Shown piece after piece: positions 10,029-13,000 of a DNA stretch of 64,000 bases. A program made the position numbers and the translations under genes. Numbering within the stretch: position 1 is the first letter of the stretch; each line of letters begins with the position of its first letter. The notes under the pieces are model-generated. The model saw nothing but the letters and a program-made list of their open reading frames with translations. It did not search any database and was not told where the DNA came from. The stretch lies in contig NW_026943826.1 of assembly GCF_035594765.1 (NCBI RefSeq), positions 12,379,325-12,443,324 of the forward strand, read 5' to 3'. The stretch comes from Anolis carolinensis (Eukaryota).

Positions 10029-13000
10029 TCAATCTCCAGCGTTGATCCTCTTGGTGTAGCTCTGGATGGACATTTGGAAGTGCTGGTTGGTGTTGAGCTC
10101 GGGGCGGAAGAGGATGAGGAAGACCTTGGGGCTGAAGTACCCGGTGGAGACCCCTCCGAGGGTGACCAGGAGGGAGGCCACGTACATGGCACTCAGGTAC
10201 CTCCCCACGTAGACGCTACTGGCGATGACGTACGAGATGGAGGAGGTGAAGTAGACCATGAGGCTGAAGGTCAGGCACTTGGCCTCGGAGTAGCTACTGG
10301 GCAGGTCCTTGCCGAGGTAGCTCAGACCAAAGCAGAAGACTCCCAGGAAACCATTGTAGACTCCTCCGGCCACCACCGGGATGGACTCCTCCGAGCTGCA
10401 GAGAAGGAAGATGGACGTGGCTGAAAGGCTGTAATCCCGGCGCGGGGTCGGATGGTTGGTGGCGAAGGAGATGACGACCATGAGCCCCTGCAGTCCGGTG
10501 AGGGTGACAATGAGAAGCGCCGGACCCTTGACCCTGCGCCAAGTGTCGTAGAGCCCCCCGGCGGCCTTGAAGATGAGGGCGATCTGGATGGAGCGGGTCA
10601 ACATGCAGGACAGGCACAGGCTCAAGTTGACGTTGTATAGCGGCATCCGTAGCAAGCAACCCAGCCTCCCCGGCGGGCCGAAGTAGCCGTAGACGCTGAG
10701 GGTGGCCCCGGCCAGAGCGCCCAGCATGACCAAGGAGAAGGGGCCTCCCGCCGACCGCACCACCGGCGTCCCCAAGTGGCGGACAAAGAGGGCCGCCGTG
10801 AAGGCCAACAAGGAGAGGAGCAAGCAGGCCGCGGTCAGCAGGGCCAGAGAGACCGGGTCGGAGAAGGGCAGGAAGACCGTCTCGCGGGGGAAGCACGACT
10901 CGCTCCCGGACGGGGACCACTCCTCCCTCCGGCACTTCTGGCACGTGTAGAGGTCATCTATATATATAAAAATGTAATGTACGTTTGTAGGACGGAGTAA
11001 ACAACAAAACCACTGAACCAAATCACAGCAAATTTGGCCACAAAAGACAGAGTCATCCAATCTATGTCTTTCAAACAAAAAACCTGGAAAATAATAATAT
11101 AATAACTTTATTCTTATACCCCGCCCCATCTCCCCGAAGGGACTCGGGGCAGCTTACATGGGGCCTTGCCCAACACAACAATATAACAACAACAACAAGA
11201 CAATAAAACAAATATCCCAACAATAAAATATCAGCATCAATGAAACAGTCATAAAAATCAACATGCAAAATAAAACGTTAAAAACAGGAGACTAATACAC
11301 GGATCGGGGCCAAAGTGCAGAATATTTCAAAATCGGGGAGAGGTAGTTTCACAGCTAAAATAGTCAATAAAGTGCAATATAATACTGGCAAGGCATCACC
11401 GATGGAGCTCTTGTTGAGTGGGCAGATAAATCAAACCTACAACGATTAAATAAAGTCCAAATTAGAGAACGAGGAAGAGCCGTTTTCAACCCTGGTTGCT
11501 GGTCAGAAGGGTAGGCCCACTTCATCTCCTAGAAACGCCCTCGGCCACAGTGGCAGCCAGGGTTCAGTCTTTTGAGGCTGCAAAGCTATTCACTGCTATT
11601 CCACCTGGCCAGTATTCCCATAAGCCACGGCAACACGTGGCCGGGCACAGCTAGTATATTATAATATTATAATATTGGCAAGAGATGTTTCCTCCCAGAG
11701 GATGCAGGTGTGCGACCGCAATGTAGGTCTCAAAACACACCTGTTTCCTGCCCCATCCATCGGCAGGAAGGCCCACCGCGGATACGGGATTTGCATCCGT
11801 CGGGAGGAAGGCTCACCGCGGATACGGGATTTGCATGGAAAGCAATGGAGCCATCCTCGGCTCCAGGGATGGGTTGGGTCCCCATCTTTAGGACGTAGCT
11901 GAGCCCTAGAGATGGGGGCCAGACCCACCCTTTGAGCCCAAGACCCATCTTTCCTGCGTCCACTCACCGCTTCGGTTCAAGAAGGTCCCCGGGAGACAGG
12001 CCACGCAGTGGAAGCAGCAGCGGTGGGTGCCTTGTGGGACCTTCTGCTCCCCGGCCCCACAGTCTCTGGAGCAAACCGACGTGGGGACCTGGGGGGCCAT
12101 ATAAATGACGGAGACACTAGTCTTGAAATTTTCCCCAGTGGAACAAATCATAACAAAATCAGTACAAAACTTCGGAGATTCAGATTACGAATCCTCAGAA
12201 TCATTACGAAACTGAGCGGAATCCAGCCGAATCTCCAAAACGAATTAGTAATTGAATGAGTGAATTAATGGACTTTGAGTGAAGAAGGACAATGAGTATG
12301 AACGAGTGAATGATAGCCATACAAATGATGAGGAAATGGCTCTTGTGGAATGAATCGTAACAAAACGAGTTCAGAAGCTTCGGAGATTCGGATTACGAAT
12401 TCTCGGAATCATTACGAAATGAAACGAATCCCCTCCGAATCTCCGAAACTAATTAGTAATTCAATGAGTGAATGGATGGACTCTGAGAGAAGAAGGATGA
12501 TGAGTATGAACGAGTGAATGATAGCCATACAAATGATGAGTAAATGGCTCTTGTGGAATGAATCATAACGAAACCAGTATGAACCTTCGGAGATTCGGAT
12601 TATGAATTCTCCAAATCATTACGAAACGAATCGAATCCTATCTGAATCTCTGAAACAAATTACTAGTTGGATTTCAGTCTCTTCACACACCTATAGAGAG
12701 TATGAATGAGTGAATGAATGAACTCTGAGTGAAGAAGGATGGTGAGTATGATTGAGTGAATGAGTGGACACTGAGTGAAGAAGGAACGGGTAAACTAATA
12801 GACAATGCATGAAGAAGGGTGTGAGTATGATTGAGTGAATGAATGGACTGAGTGATGAAGGATGGTGAGTATGAATGAATGAATGAATGAATGAGTGGAC
12901 TACAAGTGCAGAAGAATGGTGAGTACGAATGAGAGAATAAATGGACTAGGAGTGAAGAAGGATGTGAGTATGGATGAATGAATGAATGGACTCTGAGTGC

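Follow-up and report, generated by a model that had tools for sequence, protein, structure and literature searches.

A 64-kb window of the green anole genome (Anolis carolinensis contig NW_026943826.1, positions 12,379,325 to 12,443,324; coordinates below count from the first letter of this stretch) contains, on its minus strand, a TAS1R1-like taste receptor gene whose fifth intron ends in a transposon. The last 698 nt of this intron are filled by a non-autonomous Helitron, antisense to the gene and a single base away from the old junction with exon 6, which encodes the seven-transmembrane (7TM) domain. On the gene strand, the 5' end of the element (TCTATATATATAAAAA...) becomes ...TTTTTATATATATAG|A and would present the spliceosome with a U/A-rich tract and a TAG acceptor in phase with the GTGAGT donor of exon 5. 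On the comparisons set out here, the AG at 10959-10958 probably defines the working 3' splice site of exon 6, in the place of a native acceptor that the anole lineage has lost.

The junction between exons 5 and 6

Exon 5 ends in phase 1 at 11968 (...TTC TTG AAC CGA AGC G) and is followed by GTGAGT, in agreement with an earlier note on this stretch. Roughly 1 kb further on, the sequence of the gene strand is tttttatatatatAG|AT GAC CTC TAC (in longer form acattacatttttatatatatAG|AT GAC CTC TAC ACG TGC), the plus strand being GAGGTCA|TCTATATATATAAAA. That note had identified the phase-compatible AG with the reverse complement of the Helitron start, and this is confirmed by the TC at 10957-10958: the AG is the complement of Helitron bases 2 and 3 and hence lies inside transposon sequence, 3 nt upstream of the ancestral junction, and the reverse complement of the whole 5' terminus comprises a T/A-rich tract, the AG and the first exon base. 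Its further claims that the expected acceptor position reads TG (10956-10955, where the homologous position is AG in Sceloporus and Pogona), that removing the Helitron (10957-11654) in silico leaves no AG there (...TTATAATATA|TGACCTC) and that use of the Helitron AG keeps the frame with one added Asp (NRS-DD-LYTC, as in UniProt H9GHN6) were all reproduced. From this AG the frame is open for 309 codons. Over the stretch compared (10000-12151, free of N), the window is identical to GCA_035594765.1.

A scan of the whole intron returned 15 in-phase AGs, three of which (exon starts 10957, 11083 and 11152), all within the Helitron, are stop-free to exon 6. The AG singled out in the earlier note is thus the nearest in-phase one but not the sole one. 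Position-weight scores, based on textbook frequencies and used for ranking only, are 3.5 for the Helitron-end AG, 3.6 for the gene's own exon 5 acceptor, 4.2 for the native site of Sceloporus and 6.6 for the site with exon start 11083; the candidate with exon start 11152 has no pyrimidine tract. Downstream cryptic acceptors were rejected because the first 55 nt of exon 6 contain six AGs, none of them in phase, while a U12-type or AT-AC intron is ruled out by the GTGAGT donor.

The U2 spliceosome defines a 3' splice site by the AG together with a tract and a branch point. The AG at 10959-10958 would work with a branch point that likewise lies inside the Helitron (Table 1), and 11968|10957 is the expected main productive junction, because the Helitron end offers the closest AG that has both a U-rich tract and a plausible branch site. 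The product would be longer by a single Asp (NRS-D-DLYTC). Use of the downstream TG, 3 nt away, would be at most a minor second-step alternative, and some competition may arise from the AGs at 11085-11084 (in frame) and 11014-11013 (frameshifting).

The existing annotations of the gene (Ensembl, NCBI and the vertebrate T1R catalogue of Nishihara et al.) all rely on the Helitron AG, and none mentions its Helitron origin. In the Ensembl and UniProt models, the junction NRS-DD-LYTC combines the GT donor with this AG. Both NCBI models (XP_062822042.1 and XP_016854180.1) and the supplement of Nishihara et al. have TFLNRNDLYTC instead (NR-N-DLYTC), which requires a GC donor, 3 nt further upstream than the GT (exon end 11971; GC, 11970-11969), to be joined to the same AG. 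An error at T 10956, which the note had offered as a possible refutation, was rejected: the models built on the older, independent assembly AnoCar2.0 (H9GHN6 and XP_016854180.1) also need AG|ATGAC, and therefore T 10956 is no assembly error and the arrangement is present in at least two animals.

Loss of the native 3' splice region

The search for an ancestral acceptor in related lizards, which the note had proposed as a check, recovered a native AG in both outgroups. That of Sceloporus is canonical, ctgacctctgctctcgacccacAG|AC CTC TAC AC (cccacAG|ACCTC), with the AG at 5702-5703 of the locus (L002), and that of Pogona reads ctgattactgctctcacctcccacAG|GT TTC, with the AG at 5181-5182 (L004). 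The pyrimidine tract ctgctctc.acc.cccacag is common to both and is thus older than the split of these two iguanians. Before the Helitron, the last host sequence with outgroup homology is a mid-intron block at 11688-11747. Beyond this block the intron runs on for ~610-640 bp in Sceloporus and ~430-470 bp in Pogona, whereas in the anole it continues with 33 nt of host sequence, the Helitron and then one base; homology stops at ~11688 and restarts exactly at G 10955, which corresponds to position 5703 of L002.

Since the outgroups keep 430-640 bp and a native AG where the anole has neither, the comparison shows that the anole lineage has lost its native 3' splice region, from the branch site through the pyrimidine tract to the A of the AG, and that more than a plain insertion took place. 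With this region gone and the last 698 nt of the intron made up of Helitron, any productive acceptor must be borne by the Helitron. The view of the Helitron end as an essential acceptor, advanced in the earlier note, is therefore upheld in its structural part, with the native region gone and the Helitron standing at the exon. Its scenario of a simple insertion has to be given up, at least 400 bp of native intron having been lost as well.

The Helitron and its relatives in the window

The segment at 10957-11654 conforms to the structural definition of a non-autonomous Helitron. It begins with TC (10957-10958) and ends in CTAG (11651-11654), both ends recurring in copy 2 and the CTAG also in copies 3 and 4, consistent with the 5' TC and 3' CTRR of this class, and a palindrome stands 9 nt before the CTAG, close to the 10-12 nt usual for the terminal hairpin. 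For the 3' end, the centroid DNA fold gives a 6-bp stem of not unusual energy (z = -1.2). Searched with blastn against the window, the element returned two 5' ends and four 3' ends, and alignment of all copies places the limits of similarity exactly at A|TC and CTAG|T. The host flanks are A 10956 and T 11655, as they are A 6436 and T 6884 for copy 2, and T follows the ends of copies 3 and 4; no target-site duplication and no terminal inverted repeats were seen in the flanks and ends inspected. This A|T target rule is obeyed in ~97% of 1751 insertions of Helraiser, which also prefer an AT-rich 3' flank (PMC4778049), and the flank at 11655-11674 agrees with that preference.

Non-autonomous Helitron families are abundant in the green anole (PMC3014272), and the present copy resembles the Helitron-1N and Helitron-2N_AC families of that report in species, element type, size range (550-2000 bp), TA-type target and foreign cargo. 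Copies 1 and 2 diverge by ~12-28% in their common parts, putting the copies in this window among the not very young ones; this divergence is closer to the old 2N1 family than to the young families. A nested or captured segment of ~390 bp (~11060-11450) is carried by copy 1, the element in intron 5, and is missing from copy 2. Part of it, 11090-11211 (...aactttattcttataccccgccccatctccccgaagggactcggggcagcttacatgggg...), recurs with 82% identity at 62628-62755, directly after the CTAG|T end of copy 3 and preceded there by (AAT)n; this repeat seems to travel with these Helitrons or to insert beside them. A scan of the Helitron, nested segment included, against Rfam returned nothing, and no autonomous, RepHel-encoding copy was found in the 64-kb window.

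Identity of the gene and signs of constraint

The gene is annotated as 'taste receptor type 1 member 1-like' (XP_062822042.1), corresponds to UniProt H9GHN6 and is listed as T1R1 by Nishihara et al. Its best matches are the TAS1R1 genes of lizards, crocodilians, birds and mammals, the nearest being those of other lizards, and the tree of the 7TM exon places it as the sister of Sceloporus TAS1R1 (support 96/97). A word search with this exon, made within a length window, gave just two fragments of ~50% identity, the full-length relatives coming from a larger search; human proteins among the matches were left aside. Relatives, tree and catalogue together assign the gene to the T1R1 clade of class C taste receptors, and the three families that make up T1R architecture (ANF_receptor, NCD3G and 7tm_3) are all recorded for the annotated product. 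The anole gene does not occupy the usual T1R1 position beside NOL9 and ZBTB48. NOL9 is the usual neighbour of TAS1R1 (bioRxiv 10.1101/127654) and adjoins it in Sceloporus; the anole gene lies next to an FHA-domain gene (FHAD1-like) and CTRC-like exons, and would be either a relocated orthologue or a lineage-specific copy.

Exons were translated and searched singly, and joined models were used only where databases returned them (P0215, P0287). No in-frame stop interrupts the exon-level translations (~830 codons, aligned to the annotated proteins), and each of the three Pfam domains is complete, the 7tm_3 match of exon 6 (3.6e-47) spanning profile positions 2-251 of 251. Against Sceloporus, the ratio of nonsynonymous (dN) to synonymous (dS) divergence is 0.12 for exon 5 and 0.43 for exon 6 (dN 0.30, dS 0.69). 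In the tree of the 7TM exon, the branches measure, in substitutions per site, 0.044 for the A. carolinensis tip, 0.10 for the A. sagrei tip, 0.19 for Sceloporus and 0.54 for the anole stem, and among the 38 differences between the two anoles, five are clearly derived in A. carolinensis, having arisen since its split from A. sagrei, and 13 in A. sagrei. This suggests fast change in the common ancestor of the anoles followed by constraint, a pattern that a long-dead pseudogene would not be expected to show. Taken together, these signals, which average over the time before and after the Helitron event, provide indirect evidence that the gene is under purifying selection. The burst of protein change on the anole stem coincides with the siting of the gene away from NOL9, between the FHAD1-like gene and CTRC.

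Competing interpretations

Several observations weigh against a Helitron-end acceptor in a working gene. The pyrimidine tract before the AG is broken by A's; an out-of-phase AG at 11014-11013 (exon start 11012) could send splicing to a frameshifted product; and the AG at 11085-11084 is in phase, stop-free and of better consensus (crude score 6.6 vs 3.5), the frame of exon 6 being open for 65 codons into the AT-rich Helitron (10958-11156; stop TAA at 11156-11154). The annotations that use the Helitron AG are predictions and disagree over the donor. The anole stem is long (0.54), with both anoles sharing a new residue at 28 of 185 outgroup-conserved columns, and it could mean a period of relaxed constraint. 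The NCBI model of A. sagrei (P0291, compared with P0287) joins exon 4 to an extended exon 6 (...HTQDNQV|RKNPYTCQKC) and omits the NCD3G exon 5, and the junction between exons 5 and 6 may be troubled across anoles. Exon 3, finally, bears a second transposon-like lesion that also depends on splicing, an 83-nt insert that must be spliced out. Most of these points are also congruent with a reading in which the deletion and the Helitron crippled the junction, leaving a young or partly disabled unitary pseudogene, or mostly aberrant transcripts targeted by nonsense-mediated decay, with the in-phase AG a coincidence exploited by gene predictors. An AG falls in phase by chance one time in three, and the one at the Helitron end makes a weak acceptor; of the NCBI models, the newest has no exon 1 and its predecessor was flagged LOW QUALITY. 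Weighing against a crippled gene are ~830 stop-free codons and three complete domains, dN/dS below 1 and a slow A. carolinensis tip, and two anole models that differ in ~16% of their residues and still show no stop; moreover, in both transposon lesions the splice signals are exact and return the ancestral frame. We regard this reading as rather unlikely.

The remaining alternatives keep the gene functional and place the junction elsewhere. Were the upstream AG at 11085-11084 the main acceptor, 126 nt of Helitron would be exonised and 42 residues, five of them Cys, inserted into the cysteine-rich domain. This site has the best consensus among the candidates (ttattattttccAG|G) and the top crude score, and a 65-codon open run such as the one that covers it was reached in only 294 of 20000 shuffles; a second frame, however, likewise runs open for 49 codons, so that composition accounts for some of this length. 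No yUnAy branch motif is discernible by eye in the 40 nt upstream, none of the annotations uses the site, and so Cys-rich an insert in a disulfide-bonded domain whose spacing is fixed in 18 other species is likely to be harmful, making its use as the main acceptor distinctly improbable. The junction of the NCBI models and the T1R catalogue, for its part, has three concordant sequences behind it and keeps the spacing of the other species (S-[DNS]-x-[YFS]-x-C), but it swaps the G|GTGAGT conserved in Sceloporus and Pogona, a perfect donor only 3 nt away, for the very poor GAA|GCGGTG and destroys an N-x-S/T sequon that the GT donor keeps and that is found in 18/18 other species. For these reasons we think that it is an artefact of alignment, apparently reflecting a preference of protein alignment for a mismatch over a gap, and hold it highly improbable as a real junction. 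Even less credence can be given to the remnant TG (10956-10955) as the acceptor, which would restore the ancestral protein NRS-DLYTC. The TAGATG at 10960-10955 is formally an AG-TG (NAGNTG) tandem, with the two sites 3 nt apart, both in frame and differing by one residue, and TG acceptors are known, but in the study that describes them they occur only as alternatives beside an AG, most often 3 nt away, and never as sole or constitutive sites, and human AG>TG mutants activate neighbouring AGs (PMC2374985). Even with TG as the acceptor, the site would still depend on the Helitron AG for its definition.

Two of the points above come with observations of their own. In the A. sagrei model, the base matching G 10955 is apparently A (AAC), and the canonical acceptor may have been lost in that species as well, by a different route. 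The junction VRKNPYTC was back-translated and compared with the Helitron, the native tract and the AT-rich flank, all of which fit about equally badly (5-7 changes per 18 nt), and nothing is drawn from it on the presence of the Helitron in A. sagrei. The insert in exon 3 (14660-14578, minus strand, within 14576-14662) has AGGT repeated directly on either side (14662-14659 and 14579-14576); this duplication itself supplies one AG|GT as donor and another AG|GT as acceptor, and splicing restores ...SDRLQ|VEALV. Exon 3 of Sceloporus is uninterrupted, and the insert looks like an intron gained by insertion with target duplication at a proto-splice site.

Possible history of the locus

With the Helitron-end AG as the acceptor, two histories can be envisaged. 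On balance we favour a harmless insertion in mid-intron followed by a deletion from the 5' flank of the Helitron to the A of the native AG, or both in a single event. This is the simplest course because the A and T flanks obey the Helitron target rule and precise excision, taken at face value, leaves no AG; the allele would have survived since the Helitron end brought in an in-phase AG. The other history, in which the Helitron struck the AG itself or its immediate neighbourhood at a non-AT target and an A>T change may have followed via a TAGAAG tandem, seems unlikely; it needs an earlier deletion also ending at the AG. An argument that T 10956 continues the (TATTATAA)n flank with period 8, and so fixes the order of events, was dropped, the repeat being already broken at 11655-11656.

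In a genome of 1.8 Gb with Helitron copies in the several thousands (PMC3014272) and acceptors numbering a few hundred thousand, a rough reckoning before selection puts a few ends of such elements no more than 3 nt from an acceptor. The striking part appears to be that the host gene is intact and constrained, rather than the position of the Helitron as such. Tentatively, it may be proposed that, once the native 3' region had been deleted, possibly through a break at the Helitron's own 5' end, an ancient coding exon took a Helitron terminus as its constitutive acceptor, which rescued a lesion otherwise fatal to this conserved taste receptor gene, or made it tolerable; together with the insert in exon 3, the gene would then hold a small series of transposon-borne splice repairs.

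Features of the window

The coordinates of the features discussed are collected in Table 1. Some models of the gene depart from the exon structure given there. The old NCBI 'LOW QUALITY' model XP_016854180.1 (P0290) fuses CTRC-like exons (~23414-26000) to the taste receptor and is a chimera of two genes. The Ensembl isoforms A0A803TWY1 and A0A803TQI9 (P0288 and P0289) have a different end, ...FQMSIQRRLCGKI, with no canonical GT at the implied donor (~10062), and these ends look like prediction artefacts. Intron 4 holds a tandem or minisatellite-like repeat (~12250-13350, minus strand), visible as repetitive open reading frames (ORFs). Elsewhere in the window, a long tandem array with a period of ~101 bp extends over ~32300-34150 and beyond, seen on both strands as a ladder of near-identical ORFs of 57-71 amino acids, and sits within a GC-rich, strongly C-skewed stretch at 32-40 kb.

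Table 1. Positions of the gene, splice-site and Helitron features in the 64-kb window
Feature	Positions	Strand	Basis or remarks
Exon 6 (end of cysteine-rich domain, 7TM domain, stop TGA 10031-10029)	10029..10957	-	Translation; Pfam 7tm_3
TG at ancestral acceptor position	10955..10956	-	G 10955, surviving G of ancestral AG; T 10956, host A of the Helitron A|T target
Candidate 3' splice site AG from the Helitron (TCT read as AGA)	10958..10959	-	In phase, stop-free; exon start 10957; used by Ensembl, NCBI and T1R catalogue models
Candidate branch site TTTAC (A at 10998)	10997..11001	-	Inside the Helitron, 40 nt upstream of its end AG with no AG between; predicted from sequence
Competing in-phase AG, ttattattttccAG|G, exon start 11083	11084..11085	-	Would add 42 Helitron-encoded residues, five Cys; 126 nt upstream
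Non-autonomous Helitron, 698 bp, antisense to gene, in intron 5, abutting 7TM exon	10957..11654	+	Termini, hairpin, flanks, other copies
Helitron 5' terminus, TCTATATATATAAAA	10957..10971	+	Identical 15-mer starts copy 2 (6437-6451); similarity begins exactly at A|TC
Helitron 3' end: palindrome GCCACG/CGTGGC (11624-11629, 11636-11641), then CTAG (11651-11654)	11624..11654	+	Common to four copies
AT-rich host flank, TATTATAATATTATAATATA on gene strand, adjoining Helitron 3' end, host T 11655	11655..11674	-	Sequence reading
Mid-intron conserved block	11688..11747	-	blastn; Sceloporus L002 5017-5092, Pogona L004 4658-4748
Intron 5 donor GTGAGT, canonical	11962..11967	-	Flank AGCG|GTGAGTGGACGCAGGAAA kept in Sceloporus; Pogona AGCA|GTGAGT
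Exon 5 (NCD3G, cysteine-rich domain)	11968..12088	-	Translation; Pfam NCD3G 3.8e-13; acceptor AG 12090-12089
Helitron copy 2, full	6437..6883	+	blastn, alignment; flanks A 6436, T 6884
Helitron copy 3, 3' end	62589..62620	+	CTAG 62617-62620, then T
Helitron copy 4, 3' end	40706..40737	-	CTAG 40709-40706, then T

Relation to known systems and significance

New exons and splice sites, most of them alternative, are well known to arise from transposon sequences, and the anole locus is a plausible further example of this phenomenon. Its closest parallel in mechanism would be the exonisation of antisense Alu elements, in which a poly-U tract and an AG act as the 3' splice site: in both cases an antisense element offers a U/A-rich tract with an AG, and the upstream AG at 11085-11084 likewise lies in the antisense A/T-rich tail of the nested element. 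In the anole, by contrast, no new cassette exon would arise; the end of the element would replace the lost acceptor of an ancient constitutive exon, with a shift of one codon. Cases in which a transposon end has taken over in this manner from the native acceptor of an old constitutive coding exon are rare. In a similar vein, the exon trapping and chimeric transcripts described for Helibat and Helraiser (PMC4778049) also involve Helitrons that offer RNA-processing signals inside genes, but those cases use captured internal promoters and donors, whereas the AG in the anole is the element's own terminal TC(T) read antisense. Searches of the literature text turned up no described case of a Helitron terminus serving as an acceptor. 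The TAG-ATG at the junction, finally, is a candidate for the NAGNAG and NAGNTG tandem acceptors (PMC2374985; PMC2699507), with its two sites offering an in-frame choice of one residue, and differs from these in that the tandem derives from a transposon end beside the G of a destroyed AG, rather than from point mutation.

The junction also bears on practical work with the receptor, of which the three public protein models differ at this point (SDD vs N-D), the published T1R catalogue holding the less likely version; the discrepancy matters for the expression of anole T1R1 in functional assays. If RNA confirms the junction proposed here, the invariant 5'-TC(T) of Helitrons would constitute a ready-made antisense AG, and the anole TAS1R1-like gene would provide a compact model of how a gene may survive a destructive rearrangement near an exon border.

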